From Guillardia theta CCMP2712 (taxonomy: Eukaryota > Protista > Cryptophyta): 32,207 nucleotides of DNA. The notes below the pieces were generated by a model, which was given only the letters and a program-made list of their open reading frames with translations, did no database searches and was not told the DNA's origin. The stretch spans positions 49,747 to 81,953 of the forward strand of contig NW_005434541.1 of assembly GCF_000315625.1 (NCBI RefSeq), read 5' to 3'. Position numbers and translations under genes: made by a program. How positions within the stretch are numbered: position 1 is the first letter of the stretch; each line of letters opens with the position of its first letter. Shown one piece after another: positions 1 to 21,323 of the stretch.

Positions 1-3000
1 AGGAGGAGGAGGAGCTGTGGTAGTTGTGGAAAGGGAGAAGAAGCATGAAGAATGGGGGGAAGAGTGAGAGAGGACCAAAAACCTGGCAGAGATGAGGATG
101 TACTGGAATCCGAACAGCCATGAGAAAATATTGAAGACAAACTGCCAACAAGGTTAGTCTCAGCCATGCCTCTTCCCTCCCCTCTTCTTCTTCCTCCTCA
201 TCTCTCCGCCCTGCTCTTGCCACCCATCCTCCTGCTCCTCCTTCTCCTCCTCTCCCCACCCCATCCCCTCTCTCTGCACGCACCAGGAGCACTGGGAGCA
301 AGGACAGTATGAGGCACACGAAGCCGGCGGTCTGGTCGAGGCGGGAGAGTGACGGGAACGATTGTCCCCATTCCTTGCTACCGGGCTCGTGAGAAGGAAG
401 CAAGTGCACGTGCTGTACCCTTACAAGCCTTCCTCCGTAAAGGTCGTGACGGTCACGTCCAGCATCCATGCAGCTTTCACCTGCGGAGAAAACACAGTCA
501 CCCCTCCTTCCATTTCTTCTTCCCTCCCTCCTTTCCTTCCTACCCTCGCTCCCTCGTCCAACGTTCCTTTTCCTCTTGGGACCCCTTCCCCTTGAACTTT
601 GTGTTTTGTTTCCCTCCTCTTCTAAAGCGACTTTCTTGTCCTTTCTCCGTCCTCTCTCCCCCCTTCTACTTGTTCGTCTCCCCTCCCCTCTCCTCCCTAG
701 TTGTCCCTTGCCATCCCTCACTGAACCATGTGAAAATTCACCTGCCACGGCAGCCCCAGCCGCTTGTTGACGAGCCTCGAGATCCACTGGAGCAGCACAA
801 GCATCGATCGCTTCAGCCCTGCCCTCCCGTTACCATCCCCCAGACTGCTACCAGCATGCTCACCCGACTTGGGAAGGCCGCCTGGGGTGCGAGGATGGAG
901 GAGATCTGGGAGGAGTAAGAGAGGAAGAGGAGGGCGACGAGAGGGTGGGTGGGGGGGGGGGGGGGGGAAAAGGATGGTGGCGGAAGGGAAGGCAGGAAGG
1001 AGAGTGAGTAGATTCGCAGATTTTCGACAAGCCCAACGAGAAGGGGGACCCCAAAAAGGGGGAGGACGAGGGGGGCGAGGGGGACCAAGGGGATGGAGAT
1101 GCTCTTCCCCTCTCTGTCTGGGGGGGGGTGAGCAGAAGAAGAGGATTACCATCCTGCAGCAAACGTGAAAAGCTTAAAAGCCCTCCATGAAGGAGTTCAG
1201 GCGCCCGAGAAGAAAGGGAAGGAGGGGGGGCTTGGGCCCCCCTTCTCTGGCCCAGGGGTAAAAGCCCCCCCATCTCCTTCATCTGAGATTGCGTATAGGT
1301 ATATGGATAGGAGCAACCATAAAAGNNNNNNNNNNNNNNNNNNNNNNNNNNNNNNNNNNNNNNNNNNNNNNNNNNNNNNNNNNNNNNNNNNNNNNNNNNN
1401 NNNNNNNNNNNNNNNNNNNNNNNNNNNNNNNNNNNNNNNNNNNNNNNNNNNNNNNNNNNNNNNNNNNNNNNNNNNNNNNNNNNNNNNNNNNNNNNNNNNN
1501 NNNNNNNNNNNNNNNNNNNNNNNNNNNNNNNNNNNNNNNNNNNNNNNNNNNNNNNNNNNNNNNNNNNNNNNNNNNNNNNNNNNNNNNNNNNNNNNNNNNN
1601 NNNNNNNNNNNNNNNNNNNNNNNNNNNNNNNNNNNNNNNNNNNNNNNNNNNNNNNNNNNNNNNNNNNNNNNNNNNNNNNNNNNNNNNNNNNNNNNNNNNN
1701 NNNNNNNNNNNNNNNNNNNNNNNNNNNNNNNNNNNNNNNNNNNNNNNNNNNNNNNNNNNNNNNNNNNNNNNNNNNNNNNNNNNNNNNNNNNNNNNNNNNN
1801 NNNNNNNNNNNNNNNNNNNNNNNNNNNNNNNNNNNNNNNNNNNNNNNNNNNNNNNNNNNNNNNNNNNNNNNNNNNNNNNNNNNNNNNNNNNNNNNNNNNN
1901 NNNNNNNNNNNNNNNNNNNNNNNNNNNNNNNNNNNNNNNNNNNNNNNNNNNNNNNNNNNNNNNNNNNNNNNNNNNNNNNNNNNNNNNNNNNNNNNNNNNN
2001 NNNNNNNNNNNNNNNNNNNNNNNNNNNNNNNNNNNNNNNNNNNNNNNNNNNNNNNNNNNNNNNNNNNNNNNNNNNNNNNNNNNNNNNNNNNNNNNNNNNN
2101 NNNNNNNNNNNNNNNNNNNNNNNNNNNNNNNNNNNNNNNNNNNNNNNNNNNNNNNNNNNNNNNNNNNNNNNNNNNNNNNNNNNNNNNCGGGCTGACCGCA
2201 ACACCGAACCTCGAGAGGAACTGAGTCTTGTCCATGCTGTTCACCTGCTCGGAAGTGAGCGCGAGAACGGGGAAGACACAGAGGAGGAAAGCAGGGGAAT
2301 GGGGGGGGGGGCATGCAGCAGGTGGAGGCAGGCAGGAGGAGGAGCAAGAGGAGGAGAAAGGGGATTAGGAGCAGGATAGAGGAGGAGGAGGAGAAGGAGG
2401 AGCAAAGTATGGGCGGGAGTTCGAGGAGGAGGACGGGAGGGAGCGAGGGAGCGAGGGAGCGAGGGAGCGAGGGAGGGAGCGAGGGAGGGAGCGAGGGAGG
2501 GAGGGAGCGAGGGAGGGAGCGAGGAGGAGGAGGAGAGACCATCTGGCCCGAGGAATCCTGGAACATGCGAGCGATGGTGAACTGCTCGCGCTCACTCGAC
2601 TTGAGGTTCTGCTCCTGCAGCTTCTGGCGCACAACCTCGCAGAGGACGGACGAGTCCCTTCCTGATCTCCTCAGAACCCTCGGAGGCTGGCACCTCTTCT
2701 CCCTCTCCTGCCTCCTCCTGTCCCACAGGCACTCCGGCACCTCCTGCCGCATCACAAACTTGCTGGGATGGGCAGAGAGCAGTTTGGTCTCCTTGGGGTC
2801 CTTGCGGCGGACGGGATACTGGTCCCAGACGTTCTCATCCTGTAAGAGGAGGAGAGCTTGAGAGGAGAGCGAGGAAAGAAAGTTGGAGGGTTTGTAGAGG
2901 ACGGAAGCAAACAGCGAGAGCAAGAGGAGAAGGACGAGATGATGAAAAAAGGACAGAGATAACGAGGAGGAGGAGGAGGTTACCTCAGAGAAGATCCAGA

Positions 3001-3394
3001 AAGTGTCAAGCCTCTCCAGCAGAGCTTTCAGCTGCGCCTCTTCGTCCGAGCCCTTCTCCGCAAACATCTTCTTCACCTCGCCCAGCAGCCGATCCCAGCT
3101 CGATGCCTCTTGCTTCTTCCTTGCCAGCGAGCTCAACGAGGAGAGGAGGAGGCCCTGCATGCTGTCGACCTCATGCAGGAGCTGCTGCCACTGGACGAGG
3201 ATGGAGGATGGAGCCTCCCTTGAGGAGTAACGGGGAGGAGGAGAGTCGATGAGGTTGAAGTCCTGCAGGCAGACGATGTCGACGAAGCAGGGAGGGAGAA
3301 GCACCTCTAGATCGTCATCGATGTCCCTCCCGAAGACCTTCAGGGAAGACAATAGCAGATTTCAGTCCTCTCATCATCTCCAGCCCAACCATCT

Positions 3395-3447
<53 letters not shown>

Positions 3448-5944
3448 CCCCATCCCCTTCCTCCCCCTCCTGAGTCAGCTCTCCAACCCTTGCCTCCCTT
3501 CTGCCCTTCTGCCCTTCTTTATCCATCTCCATTCCCCCCGCTCGTTCACCTGCACTAGAGGGTGACGTTGCATGTCCTGCAGCCGCCAGTCGATGCATCG
3601 CTCAAGATGGTCGATGCAGATCTGCTTCTGCTCCGACAGCAGCGGCAGCACCTGCCCGTGCGTGCGAGCATGCACGTACTCCGACGCCAGCTAGGGCTCG
3701 ATCAGCCAACAGACGAGCAGGGGAACAAGGATAGATGCGGGGGTGGAGGAGGGAGAAGATGGATACACGAGTGGAGGAGAGCAGGAGTAGCGGGGTAGAA
3801 GGAGGAGACGGGGAGGAGAGTTGAAGAGAGCAGAGTGACGAAGAGGAAAACAGCAGCAAGAGAGGGAGAAGAGAGCGATACATGGGGAAAGAGAAATGGA
3901 GGTCAGGACAGCAAGGGAAGTATGAGAACAAGAGGTCGAGAGATCGGGAGAGAACCTTGCGGGCCCTTGAGATGATCTTCCATCGAGTTGAGGCGACTTG
4001 CCTGGATGATCAAGGAAGACGAGAGCAGGAGCAGGAGCAGGAGCAGGAGGAGGAGGAGGAGGAGGAGGGACCGATATATTGTTAGCTTATCGTCTTTGAA
4101 ACCCCGCGCTGAGTCTCACCTGGACTGGCCACTCTTCCTCCTCTCCTCAGGGGAGCACATTGCCTGGATGAGATTTCCAGCGCTCCTATCGAGGTTCGCT
4201 CGACTCGAGGAGGATGAGGAGGACGGCCAGCAGCCGTCGAGGAAGCGATCAAGCATGTCAAGGAGGAGGGCAGGCTTCAGCTGCTGCTGCTCGTTGAGGT
4301 TCCTCTGCTTGAAGAAGGCGGCCTTGACGACGCGCAAGATGTCCACGAGGATAACGGAGAAGAAGAGCAGATTCCCGTGGATGTAGAGCTCATCATCTTC
4401 GCTGTGCATCCTGGCGCCTGTGATTGTCATCCACAGCCCGATGTAAATCTTGATCTCCTCCGCCCGCTGAATGTTCCCATCCCTGCCCCATTGTCACCAG
4501 CTCCTCCCTCCCCCCTCCCGATCCTGCACCCTCATAACTCTTGAATTTCGAACTTCCTCTTCCCCCTTCCCCCTCGTCCCCCTCGTCCTCCTCCTCCTCT
4601 CTGCCCTCCATAACTCACCGGACGAAGTTTCCTCCTCGTTCCCTCATCAGCAGGTACGCAAACGCCGTCCGAAGGAAATTATAGAGTCGAGGCTGCAGCT
4701 CGAGCAGCTCCCATCTTAACCCTCGCTGTGTCAAGCACCAATCAGCCCCAGCATTCCACAATCTCTCCGCCATCCCCCCCCTAACCCCACCCCCCCTCCT
4801 CCCCTCCTCCCCGATGCCCTGAGGATTCTCAACGCTTCTCTTTGACGTTTGCCTTCCCATCTCCTGATCCACCTACCTCCTCCCCTTTTCTTCCCTCGTT
4901 CTCTTTCCTGCCCTGCTTTTCCATTCTCGCACCTCCTCTCTCCCCCTCCCTCCTCTCCCCTCCCCTCCCCTCCCCTCAACTCACCGAGGGATGCGCCACC
5001 ATCCGAGGATCCAAGCAGATCGCCTTCTCTGTCACTCTCTCGATGAGCATCTCGATGGCCTTGAGGTGCCGCCGGTTGGGTCGGAGGTCTCGAGTCGTAT
5101 GCTCCAGACACATGGGCGTCAGGCTCGGCATCCTCCCTCCCTGTCCTGTCACGAAGCACGAGGTGTCGAGCCAGAACGCCGAGAGGACATCAAGAGTCTG
5201 CTTGACCTCGATCGGATCACCCTTCATCAGCTCCTCCAGGTACTTGTGGAGGACCCTCAGGTATGCGTCTGAGCTGCCCCTCGTCTGCATGCTCAGGTTG
5301 CTCATGGAGACTCGCGCGTCCAAGTGTCTGCATACCACGGGAAACGCGCCGATGGCATAGAGGAGGAGCTGAGACGCCGAGCATTCAATCGCCACTGGCA
5401 TGTTCTGGCGTGGGATCAATTTCTCCGGAAGAAACCTGCTGGGGAACTTGAACTGCGAATACTGCCGCAGCTTCCTCACTGCAAGAAACAGTCCTCCAGT
5501 CTTCCCATGCTGATTCCGAGAGGAGGAGGGAGTCCCGTGCCTCCTCTCCCCCGTCATCTTGGCTCCTTCGACAATCGCCAGCACCAGAGCTTCTAGGTCA
5601 AGATCGACCTGATCAGGGCTGAGCCTCGACACCAGCAGGGGGGTAGGGATCTTGGTCTTCTCGTCCATCTGCATGATCTCCTCCAGGTCCGTGGGGATGC
5701 CGAAGATCGACTTGATGAACTCAGGGAGAACCTTCTCGAACTCGTCGTGGTTGTTGCTCGAAACTTCTGCCAGGTAATTCGCCACCTGCGAGCATTTCAG
5801 ACCTCCTGCCGTCGCCACGCTCGAACTTACCCATCGGCAGTCTATCCACTTCGCCATTCCTGTCTTGGGCGCCATACCTCCTGCCGCCCCCCCTCCGGCC
5901 ATCACGCCCGCCATTCCTATCCCTGACGCAGTCCTTCCCGCCAT
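1..5944 (-). CDS. SMPD4: Sphingomyelin phosphodiesterase 4-like protein (neutral sphingomyelinase 3 / NET13 family); multi-exon, spans the N-gap, 3' end probably at or beyond the window start
   Basis: ATG at 5944. Collinear blocks resemble SMPD4 motifs as I recall them: LPEFIKSIFG, GGLFLAVRKL..QFKFPSRFLP, SSDAYLRVLHKYL, LDVLSAFWL (exon 1); LQPRLYNFLRTAF (~4660-4700); YIHGNLLFFSVILVDIL (~4340-4385); LLQWISRLVNKRLGL (~750-800). Hydrophobic C-terminal exons (GFVCLILSLLPVLL / FVFNIFSWLFGFQYILISA at ~85-330) fit a tail anchor. Exact internal exon borders and the assignment of exons left of the gap are uncertain. Confidence 0.72.
1326..2187. other. Assembly gap (862 N)
   Basis: Run of N. Confidence 1.
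3395..3446. repeat. (CTCCTG)n microsatellite, intronic
   Basis: About 8 tandem CTCCTG units, the reverse complement of CAGGAG. Confidence 0.95.
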
Positions 5945-6270: not shown

Positions 6271-6342
6271 GGACTTTTAGCCGAGATGATTGATTTTGTG
6301 AAACATCGAGTCTATTTACAACAAGATTGTGACTTCCTTGAA

Positions 6343-9300
6343 TCATATCCCTCGCGTGCTCTCAGCACGAAGAATCCTGTACAACTTGTGCATCTGCAGC
6401 AGGAGAGGAAGTGAGAGGAGGGGGAGAGGAGGGTAGGGGAGAGGGAGAGCCGGGAGGGAAGGCAGGAGGGGGAAAGGAGGGAGAGCGGAGGGCGTACAAG
6501 GGAGAACAAATACCTTGATCTTCATCTGGTGAATCTTCTTATCGTGTAGCTGTATCTCCCCGATGATCTTCATGCCGCAGTTGGTCGTGAACAGGACGCC
6601 GATGGTCAAGTCCCGGTAGCCCTCCTGCGACTCCGAGGCGATGAACTTGTTCTTCACCCGGCATACCTGCGGGCAGCGTGAGAGGGAGAAAGGCAGCAGC
6701 TCCGATCCGGACCTTGATCCCTGAAGACTCGTCGAGGCTGTTGAACCACTCGAAGATCTCGAGGATCTTCTTGGGCCCCTCGCAGATCACTGAGAGCCGG
6801 ACCTGCCATGGGCATCACTGACGTGCGGCCGGCCGATGGCGACGCGTCACCGGGTCCAAGATGTACCCGCTGTAGGGCCTGACGCAGCGCAGGAGAGGGT
6901 CCGCGTACTTAAAGAGCTTCTGGCTCATCCTCGCTAGCGACTTGACTGGAGCGAAGGACACCTCCACCCGTCTCACCCCTTCTTCGAATTTGCAGTCCAT
7001 GGTGATGGAATGGTGTAGGATGTCGTTGTGGTCGTCATCGAAGTCCACACAGATGGTACTCTGGTCTGAGGAGCCCAGGACCGCCTCCTCCCAGTGCACA
7101 GTCGGCTCCTTGTCATGGCTGCGTGTTCGACCCACCACCTCGTGCGACTGGATGACCTGGAGGACCCTCTTCTGAAAGGCGTGGTTGATCAGCTTCGCTC
7201 TGAGGTGGAGCTGCGATATGAACACATCTTCGTTGTGCACTCTGTACCCGCTGGGCGAAACCTGGATCATTTTGTTCTCTTCCTGATACAGCATTTCCTT
7301 GGCATCCTCTTCGTGCATGCGGATCGCCCCAACCTGCAAGCCCACGAGCGTCAGAGTCACTCCTGCTGCGCACGAGCTCATACAAACCTCATCGTCTGAT
7401 TGCTTGTACGGCGAGTATCTCCTGGGCGGGTCGTGCGAGTCCTGAAAGACGACGAGCTTTTCTCCTGCCGCTTCCTTCTGCATGTTCTGGAACCTCGTCT
7501 GGCAGTGCTGCCCCAGCATGGCCATGTGCTTTGATACCGCAGCCTTCAACTTGGGAAACAAGTTCAGCTCGTCATCATGCCAGATGTTGATCTTGGTAGC
7601 TTTCTCCAGGAAGAAGGCGAACCTCGTTTCAAAATCATCCAGACCCTCAGTAGACGACTTCTCGGGCGAGTCATCCGGCATCAGCATGGCTTCGCAGCAC
7701 CCGACAACGAAGTCTCCCAGCAGGTAATACCGCATCTGTTCGTCACTCACGACACTCTGCAACGAGCCTCCATGATCGTGACTGTGCTCGAACGACGACA
7801 GGTTCGAGACAGTCTCGGTCTCGGCCAGCGGATGGAAGATCGCCGAGCTCCTGAGCCAGCTGCACATCGCGTTCACGTACTTGAGCTCGAAGTCCTTGAC
7901 CAGGGCGAGCCTTGCAAGATGCTCCAACAATTGATAGTCAATGACCGTCATTCTCCTTCTAGTCAGAACGAACTTCCGGTACCGCACCTCCTTGCTCGTC
8001 AGGAACCCATCCCTCCTCGTGAGCTTCAGCTGATGCCGAATATGGTGGATCATCCTTATGATCTCCACGTCATGATCTTCAACTTCAGTGTTCTTGCAAC
8101 AGTAGTACCAACTCAACAAAGCAACGACGCAAAAGAAAGCAAAGATCAAAGTAGTCGAGAGTACGATGGCTAGCACCGTCTGGGAATTGCTGGTAGAAAT
8201 GCTGGGACAGCTCTTTTCAATGTTCGGGCCGTTCCCTCCAGGCCAGGTTAAGGCGACGTTGAGCCAGGTCTGTTGCGAAACTTCCCGCTGCACTAGATAT
8301 GTGATGGTTCCTGCCTCCCATTGCGCGACGGAAATAGTGCCGTTTTCGTTTGTGTTGACCAGATCATACCTGCAGTATAGAGGACAAACACAAGATCGTC
8401 AGCAGATGAAGGAAACGGATAAGGATAAGGATTAGGATTAGGATAAGGATAAGAGAAAGGAAGAGAAGAAGGCAGCGGCGGCGGCGGTGGAGATGATGGT
8501 GATGGTTACAGCGAAAATGGAGGGGGGAGGGGGAGTAGGAAGAGCAGGAGGAGCAGGAGAATCTGTCTCACTTTGCATCCGACGGGTCCAGCTCCCTATT
8601 GAAGGTGATCAGTCCTGAAGCTCCCTCGAACCGCAGGCTGCGAAAAGTTTCTACGATGGCGGGCACATTGAAGACGGACAACCCTTTCTTGATCATTGCG
8701 TCAAACGCACGTGCCACCGCATACGTGGCATCATAGGAAAGCACCAGGTATGGGTTCGTGAACACATTCGTCAGACCCGGATACTCGTTCGGGTCTAATC
8801 TTCCCCAGAAATTCTTCATCCGCGCGAACTGAGGATTGGTTTCGTTGAAACCAACCTTCATGCCGATGTACCCCACAGGCAAGCCCGATGCAAGGGAAGT
8901 GACGGACTCACTGCCCAGCCAAATGATCTTCCCAGAAGCACCGATGGCTTTCGCAGCATCGAAGAGCTCGAGTGCGTCGGTGTTGTGCATCGCCAAGATG
9001 TAGAGGCGCGTGTTGCTGCAGTTGTCGTACATCGTCTTCAGCAAGCTCTTGGTTCCCGAGGGATTTCCAAACTCCCAGAAGAACGTCTGCTCCACCACAA
9101 TGCCAAGTTCCTGACTTCTCTGCAGGAATCTCTCTGCAAGTCCAGTGCAATAGACATCTTGGCATCCAATCAGTTGACACCTTTGCCATTTGAAATGCGC
9201 CAGAACGTCTGCAATGGCCTGTCCTTGCAGATTGTCGGAGGGGCAGGTACGTGCAAAGTTGGGGAACCGGGTGATGTTGGAAAGCACATCACTTGTAGAG

Positions 9301-10976
9301 CTGTAGCTGATGTCGAACATGTCAAGTTGAAGATTCTTCATGGCAGTGAGGGTGAGGATGGTTTCCGAGCTGAAGCCGGGACCAACGACGGCCGTTGCAC
9401 CGTTGACTGACAGATTCTTCACTATCGTAGACATTGCATTCTGCCGCACTGACTGGAAGCTGCTGCCAGAAAGGAACCCGTTCTGAGCAATCGCTCGCAC
9501 TGCAGAAGTGTCTCCGATATCCAGCTGAAAGTCGATCCCTGACAAGAGAGTTTTGTCCTCATTGATCATCATCGCTGCGACCTTTGCAGCCGCCGCTGCT
9601 TGAGCATCAGCATATCCCTTGTTCCAGCTGACAACAAACATCCCTCCCAACACGATCTTTTGACAAACTCCAACAGCTCCGTCCTCTAACGCAGGTTCGC
9701 TGCTATGGAAAGTCAACCCCCCATGACTTGTCCAGGACCCAATGTTGATCAGAGTGTTGTTGCTGATCTTCTGCTCTATATTATACCGAGCATCTTTCGG
9801 ACCGAGATCACTGTTGAAAGCGACATATCCCGACACCCCGTAAAATTGTACTTCCAGGAATGCCTCCTTGAGTGCAGTTGTGTTGTCAACTGATTGATTC
9901 CGCTCAATCAACGTTTGAAAAGCATATGCTAGCGCAAAAACTGCATCATATGCTAGTGGAATATACGAGTAGCTCTCCCACATGTCCGCACTAGGAATGC
10001 TCACATTTCCAAACGCAGAGTTCGAAAGATGGATGGGACCCTGCGCCCACAATGACTTCAGCTCCTGCATTTTGGGACTGCTGTGATTCGAAGACATCTT
10101 CAACCCTATGTAATTCGGAGGAAGGTCCTTGGGAAGCAGACTGCTTACCCCCTCCCCTCCTATCCAGATAATCTTGTGCAACACGTTGAGCTCCTGGGCT
10201 GCTAGGAAGACATTGGTTGCTTCCACATCCGTCATCAACAAGACGAAAGTCTTCGAAGCCACACAACTGGCAACAGCCTTGCTCAGATTGGCTTTCACCC
10301 CACTTAGGTCTGACATGTACCACAGGTGCATGGTGTAGGCAATGTCCATCGCCTTGGCGTGCTGGGCAAACTTGGAAGAGAGACCAGAGCAGTATACGCT
10401 GGAGCAAGTGATGATTTGACAAGACGTCAACTCCAGTGACTTCACCAAGTCCGCTAGCGCCAGGCCTTGGTAGGAGTCTGGTGGGCAAATCTTCACGAGG
10501 TCTGGGAAGGTTGTTCGGTTCGAGAGCACGGGACTGGTCGTGCTGACCACCACGCTCAGCAGGTCGCGCTGGTCCAGGTAAGGACTCAGCGCTATCGCCT
10601 CCGAGCTGTAACCAGGACCGATCAGCGCCGTTGGCACACGCGGCATCCGGTCGATGGCATCAATGAGAGAGTTTTCCACGAGCAAGCTGAACTGTGCAGG
10701 AGACACAAGATCGTTTTCAACCAGCGTCCTGGTGACAGAGATGTCACTGATCTGCATCTTGAGCTTCGTTTGAGGTAGAATGTCATTTCTGCTGTTGATT
10801 ATGTCTACTGCTGCGAGAGTGGCCGCTGCAATATATCTCTCCCAGTATGACTCTGACCAATCCACCACAAATAGCCCGCCAATGGCGATCTCGCTCGGCG
10901 GTGAAAATGCGGCCGAGAGGGATGCCGAGAGCAAGAAGAAACAGAGAAAAAAATGCGAAAGCGCAGGTATCCACAT
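6343..10976 (-). CDS. Single-pass membrane receptor: signal peptide + 2 Venus-flytrap (ANF_receptor / PBP type 1) domains + TM + cytoplasmic linker + RelA/SpoT-like synthetase (nucleotidyltransferase-fold) domain; ~1387 aa
   Basis: Exons 10976-8572, 8369-7388, 7333-6851, 6802-6713, 6666-6514 and 6393-6343, all GT-AG, total 4164 nt and one open frame. The 7387-7334 intron is in-frame and inferred. Signal MWIPALSHFFLCFFLLSASLSA. VFT motifs occur twice: IGPGYSS/VGPGFSS, TSPVLSNRTTFP/TSDVLSNITRFP, PPDSYQG/PSDNLQG, AYDAVFALA/SYDATYAVA, FYGVSG/FEGASG. TM TVLAIVLSTTLIFAFFCVVALLSWYY at ~8179-8100. C-terminus reads PVKSLARMSQKL...ILDPVRLSVIC...RVKNKF...GYRDL...GEIQLH...HKLY. Confidence 0.88.
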
Positions 10977-11714
10977 GGTGGATGTGTGCTGTTTGCAAAG
11001 TTGAAACAAGGAGAAGATTCAAAGGTACGTGGAGAGCTCCGAGCCTTGAGCGCAAAGGGCAAGGCAGGAAATCTAACGATTTCGAACCCTTCGCCAAAAT
11101 TGAGCACCGATGAAATTCAATCGAGGGGAGTTGCTGTCAAATGCTGCAGATTTCTTTTTGCGCTACATGAGATACCGCCACCATCGATCGCAACCAAGGA
11201 CTACAATTCTCAGTTGTGACCATTGAGTAGGGCGTTCGTGTTACCGCCATGTACGTTTCAACCTTGCGTCTGCAACATCCTTATCATTCTACTCAACTTC
11301 TCCGCCGGTACAGGAAAGAAGGAACCACACATCCAGACAACCATGAGCTCGCTGTCACTGCTTCCGATCCATCTTCCCCGTGCCGCCCTGGTTCTTCCCA
11401 TTCCATGCCGCATCCTGATAAACTCCCCGGGTCTAATGATGGAGAAAACTTGGACCACCCCACCCTTTTATCTAATGTACCCTACCCTTGTACCCTTTTT
11501 GCACTGCACCCCTCGATTAACACCCCTTACATAATTTGTATGGGTCCTTCTGACTACCATGAGTCACTTCCCGATCCAGCACCCTTCCTATCCCCAGAGC
11601 CCACCCTACCGAATAAGTCCCTTGCCACCACCCACCCCTACAGCATGGCTATTCGGTACCCTCACCCCTCATGGTCCTTTTTCTGCACCTCACGGATGAT
11701 GGTAGACCAGAATC

Positions 11715-15757: not shown

Positions 15758-18700
15758 ATGGCAGGGAAGATAGCGGACATGCGAGCAGAGTCAAGACAAG
15801 GGATAGGACATGATGAGACGAGCGAGCTGCATGCAGCAGCAGCAGCAGCACTGACTTGGATGGCAATCCATCGATTCCGTCGCCCCCAGTTCAACAACAG
15901 TAGCAGCCTGTTGCTGAGCTTGCTCGTGGTGTTCACGTGCTCTGCTCGAGTGGTCGGGTATGAACCTGGCAGCAAAGGCAAGGACGACAACAGCAACCTG
16001 CAGGCAACGCCGCAGATCGATGCCGCTGCACAACATTTCAGAGCAGCCATTGTGAAATTCCCCGACGAGCCCTCGAATTATGAGAACCTCTTTCAGGCTC
16101 TGTTCCTGGATGACAGGAGAGAAGAGCTCGCTCACTGGATGAGAGCCTACAGAACTCGCTTCCCAGCGCGATCGCAGACATGCTGGTTCCACTTCAACAT
16201 GGCAATGACGCTCTACGGGCTACAGGCTCACGAGGAAAGCTTGTATCACTTCGTACATGTCATCACCCTCCCTACAACTCGTCGCGCGATCGGAGGATGC
16301 ATGCTGCTTCTGACTTCCTCGTCCGATCGTTCCACCACATCGGTCTCCTCCTCGAGCTCTTCGGACATGAGCAACAAGCTTGCCGCGCGTTTTGGACCAC
16401 TTTGAGACTGAAGTGGGAAGATCCCAAGTATGGCATGTACCTGGTGACCTGCTTGCTGAGTTCGGAGAGGGTGAGTGAGGCTGCGAGCATCCATGCTGCT
16501 CTGCTAGGGACGAGGTCGGCAGAGTTCCCGAGGCCCTGGGAGGACATCCTGCGGTTTCGATCGAGCAAAAGGAGCAGGATGAGTCCTTGGCATGGGATCA
16601 TATTCCATCTGCTCGACAAGCTGGAGAGGGTGTACGACATGAAGGCTGCGCGGAATATCTCGAGGGAGGCTCGAGAGCAGATGATGCAGGAGGTACACAA
16701 CCGCCAGCACCCCCACGATTGCTCCCGAGCCCAGGTTATGGTGTACAGCATGAAGAACGCTTTCGCTGGGCTAGGAGCCGAGGTGCACGGGCTGGTGCTT
16801 GCGCTGAACCTCGCTCATGCTCTGAAGCGAACGTTGGTCATGCCGCGGAGAGACTCTTGGTGGTACTCGGATCCTTCCAAGTGCGAGCAGGGAGGGTGGG
16901 AATGTCACTTTCTCCCGGTAGAGGTTGCTGGTGCTGTCAGGGGAGGGGATGAGAGCTTTGCAGATCTCATCGTGTCATGTGGAGGACACTGTGTTGAAGA
17001 AGTAAGTCTTGACGTGTAATGGAGTTGACGACAATCCCCCCTTGGTCCTCCCCGCTGTTCCTGATATCCTCCCTTGCTCATTCTTGTTGTTCCTGAAATG
17101 TTCTTTCCCCTTCCCGCTGTTCCTTATCGTTTCGAACAGCCGCATGGAGTACAACCACAAACTTGCCATCGAGATGCGAGGTCACAACCCTTCCAAGGCA
17201 AGGGATGAGAATGGGAAGTAACTGTTGTTTGACGTGCTGCTGCCTGCTTGCTAGGCTGATCTGCTCGCATGGAGGGGAGCCATGGCGGACTACCTGATGC
17301 GACCCAACTCCCTCATGCAGGGGAAGATGGAGGAGCTCAAGGTGAAACGAAAGTCTGCTAGACGTGTAGATGTTGAGCAGGGAGTTGGTCCAGACTGCAG
17401 TGAGCTGGCCTGTCAAGTCAACTGAGAGGGTCCTGGCACTTCACATCAGACGAGGCGACAGGATGGTCTCTTGCACAACTTGTTGTGAAGACGTCATGAC
17501 ATGAAGTACCAGGTGACAAGGAGGCCTGTCTCAGTCGCGCAGTACTTGGATGCGACATACGAGATGGTAACGCGAGAGAGCAGGGCTGAGTCGTGTCATG
17601 ATGGACCAAGGCGAGGGGATCAAGGGGAGGGACGGGCGAGGAGGAGCGGGGGGAAGGAGGACGAGAGCTAGTTGAGGTGGAGGATGGTGGTTTGAGGAGG
17701 AGACAGAGGGGTTCGAAGAGGGAGACGGAGGAAGGGTTTGATCGTTGAGTTTGTTGGAGGAAGGAGTGGAGGAGAAGGGAGGAGGTTTGTTCAGGGTGTT
17801 GGAATCCAGGTAGTGACTGAGCTGTCCGCTTTCCAGCTCCAACGCAGTGTTTTCCAATACGTTTTCTTGTGCACTGAGAACGATGAAGTCGCCTCAACGG
17901 TCGAGAAAGGTTTTCTGCTTCCTTCGCTTCCTCCCTCGTTCTTGCTGTTCCTTCTGGTTGTGTGTTTTTGTTCCTCCCTCATCAACCTCCATTTTTTCCC
18001 CTCATTTCCTCCTCCGCTCACCTTTCCTCTAACTCCCCACCTTCTGCTTCCCTTCATCCTGTCTCATCAAGCTTTCCTTTCGGCCAACATCCTTGAGAGA
18101 AACAACTCGTGTTCTTTTACCTCAGCTCCTCTTTCCACTCTCTTGTCACCTCATGACGCCTCCTCCAGCCTTCGAGGGAGACTCTCGCTTCCTAGGCATC
18201 GGTCTCCTGTATGACAGGGCAGGTGATGGAGATGGGAGGAGGAGGAGGAGGAGGGAAAAGAGATGCTGAGCCTTGATGATGAAGAGACGAGAAACTCAGT
18301 GGAGAACTCGAGAGTGCTTGAGGTTGAGTCATCGCATCCCCTCCACCTCCCCACTCACTCGCGTTGTCCTCCTCTTTCTCCTCCTCACCTCGCAACCCTC
18401 TCCTCCTCCTCCTTGTCATCTCCTCTTCGATCGTCCCTGGTCTCTTCCCTCCCTCCCCCCTCCTCCCTTCCCTCCCTCCCTCCCTCCCTNNNNNNNNNNN
18501 NNNNNNNNNNNNNNNNNNNNNNNNNNNNNNNNNNNNNNNNNNNNNNNNNNNNNNNNNNNNNNNNNNNNNNNNNNNNNNNNNNNNNNNNNCGTCAAAAAAA
18601 GGGAGGCCGCTGCTCCATCCTCCTTTTCTGTCTACAATACCCTTTATTCCTTCCCTCCTCCCTCCTCGCTTCCCTTCCTCGTTCTCGCCCCCCCTACACT

Positions 18701-19361: not shown

Positions 19362-21323
19362 TTAGGCATCGGTGAGGGCGGCAACGCCGGGGAGGACGAG
19401 GCCCTCGAGGAGCTCGAGCGAGGCTCCTCCACCAGTGGAGATGTGGGACATCTTGTCGGCGAGCCCGGCCTTCTCCACGGCAGCGACGGAGTCTCCTCCT
19501 CCGATGATGGTGATGGCTCCCTTGCTGGTGCACTCAGCGAGGGTCTTGGCGACGTCGTTGGTGCCCTTGGCGAACTTCTCGAACTCGAACACACCCATGG
19601 GTCCGTTCCAGATGATGGTGTTGCAGTCAGAAAGCTCCTTCTGGATCATCTTGGTGGACTCGGGGCCGTTGTCAAGACCCATCCAGCCGTCGGGGATGTC
19701 GGAAACGCTGGCGACCTTGGTGTTGGCGTCGGCGGCGAACTTGTCGGCAAGGACGACGTCGGTGGGGAGGATGAACTTGACTCCCTTCTCAGCAGCCTTC
19801 TTCTCGAGGGACTTGGCGAGCTCGAGCTTGTCCTCCTCGACGAGGGAGGAGCCGACGTTGAGGCCGCGGGCCTTGAGGAAGGTGAAGACCATGCCGCCTC
19901 CGATGACGAGCTTGTCGCACTTGCCGAGGAGAGACTCGATCACTCCGATCTTGGAGGAAACCTTGGAGCCTCCGACGATGGCAGCGAAGGGGCGCTTGGG
20001 GTTGGCAACAGCTCCATCAAGGTAGTCGAGCTCCTTCTGGAGGAGGAAGCCAGCCACGGAGGTGGGGATGAACTCGGTAACGCCGGCGGTGGAGGAGTGA
20101 GCACGGTGAGCGGTACCGAAGGCATCGTTGACGTAGATGTCGAAGGGAGCGGCGAGCTTCTTGGAGAACTCCTTGTCGTTCTTCTCCTCCTGCTTGTAGA
20201 AGCGGGTGTTCTCGAGGAGGCAGATCTGGGCAGAGGGGATCAGGAAGTGGAGGGGACGGGGAGACTCTTTCTGACCTCTCCGTCCTTGAGGGAATCGACG
20301 AGCTTGGTCACGTCGTCACCGATGCAGTCCTTTGCCATCTTCACGTCCTTGCCTGCCATGGCACCGCAGTATCAGCGACCAGCCTTTCCCACGGCATTCC
20401 TCCGCCACTTACCGAGCAACTCTCCGAGGCGGGTGGCGCAGGGGGCGAGGGAGAACTTGTCCTCGGGACCATCCTTGGGACGACCCAAGTGGGAAGAGAC
20501 CTGCATGACCGTCAGATCCCTTGGAGGCCTCGGCACTGCAGCTACTCACAGCAACACGAGCACCGTTGTCGAGGAGGTACTTCAAGGTCTGGACGGAGGC
20601 CCTGATGCCTGGCAGCGGGTGAGGGGAGGGGGGACGAGGGCGCGCTGGTGATCTTACGGGTGTCGTCGGTGATCTTCTTGCCATCAAGGGGGACGTTGAG
20701 ATCGCAGCGGATGAGAACCTGAGCACACGCGTGAGCCCGAGCATGGCGGGGGAGGTAGAGGCAGCAAAAGGAAAGGTGGATGGAGGGGCGGTGGAGCAGG
20801 AAGAGGGGTGGAGAGTAGGATTGGAAGGGAGATGTCACCTTCTTTCCCTTGAGGTCCGCACCCTTGAGGTCGCCAACGGACTTCTTCTTAGCAGCAGCCA
20901 TGACGACCTTGGAGAGGGGAGCCATGCGAGCAGGGCGGGCCACAGGCTGGGAGCTCCTCAAGCGGGGGGTGAAGGAGGAGGCGGCGACAGCGGGGGCAGT
21001 CTGGTGCAGAACTTGTCAGTTTCTGTGCAGAATAGGATGATTTGGATCAGGAAGGACATTTAAGAAAGAAATAACAAGGCCGACTAATATGCACAAAGAA
21101 ACCAAGTCTGACATGCACAGCAACATCTCTTCTACACCGCGGAAAGTAGCCACCTTTGAGCAGCCAAGACAAGAACAATCTTGAACTTGCAGCACAACAG
21201 ACAACACCAGCGGGAGTATCGGAGAGGATGAAGATTCACCTGCTGTCTGATCCCGAAGGAGGAGGGGACAGGGACGTAGGCAGAGGCAGCAGCAGCGCCA
21301 CAGAGGAGGAGAGCCTTGCGCAT
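19362..21323 (-). CDS. PGK: Phosphoglycerate kinase, plastid-targeted (bipartite presequence), multi-exon
   Basis: Motifs [56 protein letters not shown] and [15 protein letters not shown]. Exon 1 (21323-21240) encodes signal [15 protein letters not shown]|YVP. Exon 2 from 21000 encodes an S/A/R-rich transit peptide. Strong C/G-ending codon bias. Confidence 0.97.

Follow-up and report, generated by a model that had tools for sequence, protein, structure and literature searches.

Receptor guanylyl cyclases such as NPR-A (the ANF receptor) combine a Venus flytrap (VFT) ectodomain, one transmembrane (TM) helix, a regulatory region inside the cell, and a nucleotide-converting domain at the C terminus. 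To our knowledge, the (p)ppGpp synthetases characterized in eukaryotes are enzymes of the plastid. Plant and algal plastid RelA/SpoT homologs (RSH; Rsh1-4/CRSH) are soluble, plastid-targeted, long enzymes with HD and SYNTH domains (PMC10107265), and a 2022 review placed algal (p)ppGpp signalling in the chloroplast, with neither transmembrane nor cryptophyte forms mentioned. Atkinson et al. (2011) used RSH hidden Markov models to identify divergent synthetase-only RSH ("divRel") in fungi, Dictyostelium, and diatoms; neither a transmembrane segment nor a signal peptide is mentioned anywhere in their text (PMC3153485). Alarmone-type nucleotide signalling in the eukaryotic cytosol is an old question (discussed in PMC3153485). 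The present study describes a gene of the cryptophyte Guillardia theta CCMP2712 at positions 6343-10976, on the minus strand, of a 32,207-nucleotide (nt) stretch of contig NW_005434541.1 (positions 49,747-81,953; hereafter, the window). This gene encodes a protein of 1387 amino acids (aa) in which a signal peptide, two tandem VFT domains, one TM helix, and a cytoplasmic helical region are predicted to precede a C-terminal RSH-like domain. An earlier note, made from the letters of the window, had regarded the gene as a candidate receptor alarmone synthetase and knew of no described system like it. A literature search for a cryptophyte or eukaryotic receptor-RSH also found no description. What is new here is the RSH-like domain in a receptor-type architecture; the fold and the receptor layout are themselves known.

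The gene is expressed in G. theta as one spliced mRNA that extends from the ectodomain through the C-terminal domain. Contigs and reads from public runs were aligned to window positions 6300-11050. A 4634-nt contig (X2, record 6, depth 458) covers this interval with exactly five introns removed, and the X1 and X4 contigs, from two other studies, have identical splice joints. The three 3'-most joints were also seen in raw RNA-seq reads (X19). The skipped segments end in CT..AC on the plus strand, which is GT..AG on the minus strand. The RNA status of the Logan runs from which the contigs were taken was only guessed; since introns are removed in these contigs, they derive from cDNA. The spliced coding length is 4164 nt (1387 aa plus stop) on the minus strand, with six exons joined at GT-AG borders, as follows.

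8572-10976, minus strand: exon 1 (aa 1-802)
8370-8571, minus strand: intron 1 (202 nt, GT..AG), between the ectodomain exon and the TM exon; skipped in the X1, X2, and X4 contigs
7388-8369, minus strand: exon 2 (aa 802-1129), with the end of VFT2, the stalk, the TM helix, and the cytoplasmic helical region
7334-7387, minus strand: intron 2 (54 nt, GT..AG), in frame and open in the raw open reading frame (ORF); skipped in the X1, X2, and X4 contigs
6851-7333, minus strand: exon 3 (aa 1130-1290), last residues ..ILDP
6803-6850, minus strand: intron 3 (48 nt, GT..AG); skipped in the transcripts and absent in paralogs L009 and L011
6713-6802, minus strand: exon 4 (aa 1291-1320)
6667-6712, minus strand: intron 4 (46 nt, GT..AG); skipped in the transcripts and absent in paralogs L009 and L011
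6514-6666, minus strand: exon 5 (aa 1321-1371; CRVKNKF ... GYRD ... IIGEIQLHD)
6394-6513, minus strand: intron 5 (120 nt, GT..AG); skipped in the X1, X2, and X4 contigs and in 7 raw X19 RNA reads, and absent in paralog L009
6343-6393, minus strand: exon 6 (aa 1372-1387; MHKLYRILRAESTRGI) and the TGA stop

The earlier note had spliced six exons into one 1387-aa frame. The same model was reached from the transcripts and from the alignment to the Hanusia phi ortholog P0151, a complete transcriptome ORF of 1381 aa that is 74% identical end to end. This ortholog reads DAK/YDLVN across the position of intron 1 (slash), and intron 2 corresponds to an 18-aa gap in the alignment. A 5-exon model of 1405 aa, in which intron 2 is read as coding, was excluded by the ortholog alignment and the transcripts.

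As the earlier note had observed, the ORF track splits this gene: the raw minus-strand ORFs between 11009 and 6343 are 813, 492, 83, and 104 aa long, and introns 3-5 interrupt the RSH-like domain. Such separate ORFs are in line with a fusion artefact, in which the VFT ORF would belong to one gene and the ORFs downstream of it to others, or the C-terminal exons would have come together by chance. However, a single contig spans all exons with the introns out, including the 8572/8369 joint between the ectodomain exon and the TM exon, and the same joints are present in contigs from three studies. Furthermore, the Hanusia transcript ortholog is collinear, and paralogs without introns read through the junctions (ILDP/VRLSV, GIKV/CRVKNKF, and K/MHKLY). 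We consider the likelihood of a fusion artefact to be negligible. In the same alignments, X2 and X4 contigs (record 7) match only short stretches within 6545-6663 and then diverge; they are probably transcripts of a 54%-identical paralog on contig C108.

The encoded protein is a predicted type I single-pass membrane receptor. Its features are as follows.

10908-10976, minus strand: start codon and predicted signal peptide (aa 1 to approximately 23; MWIPALSHFFLCFFLLSASLSAA before the cleavage site and FS after it), cleavage site placed by eye
9657-10898, minus strand: VFT1 (ANF_receptor; approximately aa 27-440), approximate bounds set by eye from likeness to VFT2
8586-9599, minus strand: VFT2 (ANF_receptor; aa 460-797), the best PF01094 stretch, the last strands of which run into exon 2
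8096-8176, minus strand: single TM helix (aa 867-893; VLAIVLSTTLIFAFFCVVALLSWYYCC), the only internal hydropathy peak
7244-8095, minus strand: cytoplasmic helical region (aa 894-1159), which contains intron 2 and is conserved in the family
6346-7243, minus strand: RSH-like domain (approximately aa 1160-1387), split by introns 3-5 and placed by profile, fold, and motif register
6854-6856, minus strand: codon of Asp1289, aligned with RelA D275
6556-6558, minus strand: codon of Glu1357, aligned with RelA E335

PF01094, the ANF_receptor family with the type I periplasmic-binding-protein fold, matched the ectodomain above the gathering score in two stretches (E 5.1e-82, 276 bits). The best stretch, residues 471-808 of the 813-aa ORF, corresponds to aa 460-797 of the protein, and the Hanusia ortholog matched at 459-807 (E 2.5e-80). 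Hydropathy peaked at the N terminus (aa 1-27), which has an equivalent in the Hanusia ortholog, and at aa 864-894 (Kyte-Doolittle 2.7), a segment that ends in ...LLSWYYCC. Both Pfam and hydropathy agree with the signal peptide, two VFT domains, and one TM helix ending in YYCC described in the earlier note. Neither the 7TM domain of class C GPCRs nor the ion-channel pore of ionotropic glutamate receptors follows the VFT domains in the hydropathy profile, which has a single internal hydrophobic segment. Twelve N-glycosylation sequons are located before the TM helix and one after it.

The plan of this protein resembles that of receptor guanylyl cyclases in the VFT ectodomain, the single TM helix, the intracellular region, and the C-terminal domain of a putatively nucleotide-converting type. 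The comparison made in the earlier note holds for the layout only. In the cytoplasmic 492-aa ORF and in the ortholog, Pfam matched nothing beyond ANF_receptor and detected neither a kinase-homology domain nor a cyclase domain (PF00211). Unlike receptor guanylyl cyclases, the G. theta protein has two tandem VFT domains and a predicted output domain with the RSH pyrophosphokinase fold. It also differs from the plastid RSH of the same superfamily, since it lacks an HD domain and has both a signal peptide of the endoplasmic reticulum (ER) type and a TM helix. Two long RSH genes of the canonical type, with both HD_4 and RelA_SpoT domains, are additionally present in G. theta.

The predicted cleavage (10900-10976, aa 20-26) leaves Phe at +1, and Tyr occupies this position in Hanusia. 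An aromatic +1 residue recalls the plastid presequences of cryptophytes and diatoms. Plastid targeting was considered and judged unlikely because the VFT fold starts approximately 6 residues past the cleavage site, which leaves no spacer of transit-peptide length. A signal peptide and one TM helix do not, however, specify the plasma membrane. The protein may instead be located in the endomembranes (the ER, the ER-continuous outer plastid membrane, or the vacuole) and sense a lumenal metabolite, with the output chemistry unchanged; the biology would then be organelle-to-cytosol nutrient sensing. The aromatic +1 residue is in keeping with this location, whereas the short distance from the cleavage site to the VFT fold leaves no space for a transit peptide, and the 12 sequons and the CUB and Ephrin_rec_like ectodomains found in the family are typical of surface proteins. 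We regard an endomembrane location as unlikely.

The nature of the C-terminal domain (approximately 230 aa) was examined with structure models of two relatives, which stand for the window protein: the domain of a paralog (33% identical) and the cytoplasmic region of the ortholog from Hanusia, which shares 72% of its residues with the window protein and 85% within the catalytic core. The paralog model, of intron-less L009:488-1117, was obtained by AlphaFold2 (AF2) with an alignment of 19 C-terminal domains of the family (A1) and had a pLDDT of 87 and a pTM of 0.82. The top 50 PDB entries in a Foldseek search with this model were all RSH synthetases, the best being SAS1/RelQ (5ded, E 8e-7). VIA-align gave a Z of 15.3 to 5ded_E, with 155 residues aligned at a root-mean-square deviation of 3.0, and its top 30 were exclusively RSH (RelQ, RelP, exported SAS, Rel, CapRel, SpoT, Tas1, RelA, and FaRel2). 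Other nucleotidyltransferases (TdT and pol lambda) ranked below them at Z ≤ 8.1.

The cytoplasmic region of the ortholog, modeled by AF2 as one unit (pLDDT 86.2, pTM 0.84), gave similar results. The Foldseek top 50 were all RSH, and in an exhaustive VIA search of 48,161 PDB representatives, which was independent of Foldseek, the top 11 were all RSH (Z 13.0 to 7.8). These 11 matches all fell on model residues approximately 254-491. Shape and feature searches of the ESM Atlas also reached PF04607 clusters (TM 0.64, feature score 0.91), which we treat as leads only; a feature search with the 492-aa ORF yielded no usable match. The paralog and ortholog models support the assignment of the C-terminal domain to the RSH nucleotidyltransferase fold, a mixed sheet of five strands flanked by helices. 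Its resemblance to RelQ, RelP, Rel, CapRel, and Tas1 is much closer than that to any other nucleotidyltransferase.

The best structural matches were RelQ/SAS1 and RelP/SAS2 of Bacillus and Staphylococcus (5ded, 6fgk, and 6ewz; Z 13-15.3), with 155-168 residues aligned at 17-21% identity and strands and helices in the same order. The Asp in strand 2, the Glu-x-Gln in strand 5, the Gly-Tyr loop, and the His-x-x-Tyr helix are common to these enzymes and the domain described here. In contrast, RelQ and RelP are soluble bacterial homotetramers of approximately 210 aa that are detected by PF04607, whereas this domain is the C terminus of a 1387-aa eukaryotic receptor and invisible to PF04607.

The motifs APVKS..RM..K, ILDPVR, RVKNKF, GYRD, EIQ, and MHKLY were present in the spliced C terminus in RSH order, as the earlier note had read them. 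In an alignment by hhalign, LDPVR, GYRD, EIQ, and MHxLY were in register with FD275VR, GYQS, E335-I-Q, and AH354WKY of Escherichia coli RelA, respectively. We take D275, E335, and the other aligned RelA positions to be catalytic or essential residues. The window protein matched the family profile with 236.5 bits (E 1e-74, aa 1162-1385). K1260, R1264, K1268, D1289, R1292, K1325, N1326, GYRD1336-1339, E1357, and Q1359, all of which it carries, are 95-100% conserved in 130-170 family domains; D1289, E1357, and Q1359 are 100% conserved and G1336/Y1337 95-96%. An indirect bridge in sequence to RSH was also found in the G. theta genome: the 1019-aa ORF L021:990-4046 matched PF04607 at aa 893-1008 (E 1.5e-8; 35.4 bits, above the cut-off of 27), and the family profile matched the overlapping aa 831-978 (independent E-value [iE] 2.5e-11).

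Several results weigh against the reading of this domain as an RSH enzyme with a cytosolic alarmone as its product. Even at a threshold of E 10, Pfam RelA_SpoT (PF04607) gave no match to the window exons, to the paralogs, or to any of 19 members of the family. The family profile found no RSH among PDB sequences, and sequence searches of the PDB with one paralog and the family profile returned chance-level matches only (mL99, E 0.44; the HCN C-linker, E 0.17). The hhalign match to E. coli RelA was weak (E 0.005, probability 6.8%). GYRD replaces the GYxSxH and EIQxHD the ExQxRT of RelQ and RelP, and Ala takes the place of the first Arg in RxK. Moreover, the HD_4 search of the G. theta genome (87.1 Mb, 669 contigs) found no stand-alone Mesh1-like hydrolase that would remove a cytosolic alarmone; the only matches were in the two canonical long RSH genes. 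Regarding the assignment of the last ~300 aa to RSH in the earlier note, the fold was borne out by AlphaFold and Foldseek on the ortholog and paralog, and a match to Pfam RelA_SpoT was not obtained. Predicted structure decides RSH membership here, where direct sequence methods fail. It recovers RSH relatives that Pfam misses.

The divergence beyond Pfam detection and the altered canonical motifs would also suit a pseudo-enzyme that has kept the RSH fold for nucleotide binding or protein interaction, with the receptor signalling either by recruitment or via another partner. Inactive RSH half-domains are known in RelA and SpoT. However, the Asp and Glu aligned with catalytic residues and six basic residues are 97-100% conserved in 130-170 sequences that are otherwise approximately 40% identical, and such a pattern of conservation is typical of retained catalysis. 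We consider a pseudo-enzyme to be improbable. The RSH-fold domain predicted by the models, with its conserved active-site residues, is the sole plausible catalytic output of the family.

The cytoplasmic linker that the earlier note had placed between the TM helix and C-terminal domain is a region of approximately 265 aa, which is confidently helical in the AF2 model of the ortholog and also matches many family members. In an exhaustive PDB search, this region found nothing above the helical background (Z ≤ 6.9). It was also considered as a degenerate HD hydrolase domain, a reading rejected because no PDB match exceeded that background and HD_4 matched only the two canonical RSH genes. A homodimer prediction for the cytoplasmic region of the ortholog scored 0.00, which is evidence neither way. 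ESM Atlas clusters that resemble the helical and RSH-like module include members with ankyrin or TPR repeats, and the module may also be used in non-receptor contexts.

The same architecture was found elsewhere in cryptophytes, including the collinear Hanusia ortholog. At least 15 loci of the G. theta genome encode close members of the family, and several others more distant ones. An exhaustive phmmer search with the 492-aa ORF of the window yielded 180 relatives, and the profile of the 19 C-terminal domains (A1) 195 further proteins, none of which is annotated by Pfam. The named sources are all cryptophytes (Guillardia, Hanusia, and Cryptomonas curvata) and the rest are metagenome or transcriptome sequences. 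One paralog locus (L004) encodes exactly GUITHDRAFT_122367. Names in public databases, such as "Receptor ligand binding region domain-containing protein" and "CHASE domain-containing protein", follow the ectodomains only. The ectodomains ahead of the same cytoplasmic module comprise one or two ANF_receptor domains, Peripla_BP_6 with ANF_receptor, ANF_receptor with Ephrin_rec_like, CHASE, Phosphonate-bd, and an OpuAC-like domain with Cys-rich repeats, and relatives that match the juxtamembrane part have CUB, beta-helix, or Ephrin_rec_like ectodomains. Such shuffling of predicted ectodomains marks the family as one of sensor-output receptors. Similar to divRel, this family comprises synthetase-only RSH relatives, as judged from the models, in eukaryotic nuclear genomes and outside the plastid Rsh1-4 groups; it differs from divRel in being receptor-linked and below the detection of Pfam RelA_SpoT.

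Other G. theta loci were noted in the course of these searches. The ORF of L021 (G000:C1:833000-838000; ORF 990-4046, minus strand, approximately 1019 aa) has a second tandem copy near C1:840562-842925. Both frames contain two RSH-like domains each, with LVDxV, RVKNRF, and GYRD motifs, and look like a soluble, more canonical branch of the cryptophyte RSH-like radiation. An inverted pair on contig C206 (L022, G000:C206:45000-51500, and C206:54493-57024) has open frames of approximately 1500 aa with two family-profile domains each (iE 1e-11 to 1e-12) and zero Pfam matches. A 616-aa ORF at L019 (G000:C214:9182-12454; ORF 49-1899, plus strand) had a sub-threshold RelA_SpoT match at aa 485-591 (E 0.002) and no match to the receptor-family profile; it may be another divergent RSH relative. 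Near-identical inverted duplicates approximately 15 kb apart were found at L011/L012 (G000:C80:110438-111001, minus strand, and 126722-127285, plus strand), with a second inverted pair at C47:5616-6183 (minus strand) and 20138-20744 (plus strand), which suggests the recent segmental duplication of receptor genes. In the window itself, N runs at 1326-2187 (862 bases) and 18490-18589 (100 bases) are assembly gaps, and the apparent low-GC block at 1001-2000 is due to such runs.

We propose that the binding of a small molecule to the ectodomain rearranges the cytoplasmic module, which by analogy would probably be dimeric. This rearrangement would switch on the RSH-like domain for the ATP-dependent transfer of a pyrophosphoryl group to the 3'-OH of a nucleotide, and the product would be a hyperphosphorylated nucleotide signal in the cytosol, such as (p)ppGpp, (p)ppApp, or a related compound. 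We consider it reasonably probable that the ligand controls an ATP-dependent transfer of a pyrophosphoryl group to a free nucleotide. Within this reading, (p)ppGpp itself as the product is a guess that may equally well fail. The altered motifs indicate that the acceptor, and even catalysis, may differ, and the acceptor may not be GDP or GTP.

RSH of the toxSAS and effector types (CapRel, FaRel2, and Tas1) share the predicted fold (Z 8.4-11.6) and extend the acceptors of RSH beyond GDP and GTP to tRNA and ATP/ADP. In contrast to ligand-binding membrane receptors, they are bacterial toxins or immunity effectors under the control of antitoxins or phage proteins. CapRel and FaRel2 pyrophosphorylate tRNA at its 3'-CCA end. 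An active RSH-like domain may similarly act on a macromolecule, and the receptor would then throttle translation on an external cue, for example, stress or a signal from kin or from a pathogen. The structural matches include CapRel (7ztb, Z 11.5-11.6) and FaRel2 (8pu4, Z 8.4), the acceptor-side motifs GYRD and EIQxHD are unlike those of (p)ppGpp synthetases, and the HD_4 search of the genome found no dedicated hydrolase for a cytosolic alarmone. However, it is the nucleotide-acting enzymes SAS1, SAS2, and RelP (Z 13-15.3), rather than toxSAS, that rank highest in Z and E-value, and at least 15 constitutively encoded, expressed paralogs suit signalling over toxin-like growth arrest. We regard a tRNA-type acceptor as quite improbable and continue to favor transfer to a free nucleotide.

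On this basis, we tentatively propose that cryptophytes possess a family of "receptor pyrophosphokinases", in which interchangeable ectodomains would couple ligands to the cytosolic synthesis of (p)ppGpp, (p)ppApp, or a new nucleotide; as a complete picture, this falls somewhat short of an even chance. With expressed receptors and recognizable ligand-binding domains, the family provides a concrete and testable handle on the question of cytosolic alarmones. If active, these proteins would extend the output chemistries of single-pass receptor enzymes by a new one, alongside kinases, phosphatases, and cyclases, and their ligand-gated modules for nucleotide synthesis could serve synthetic biology. 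If the proposal is true, a eukaryote would possess a non-plastid, receptor-driven alarmone second-messenger pathway parallel to that of receptor guanylyl cyclases.

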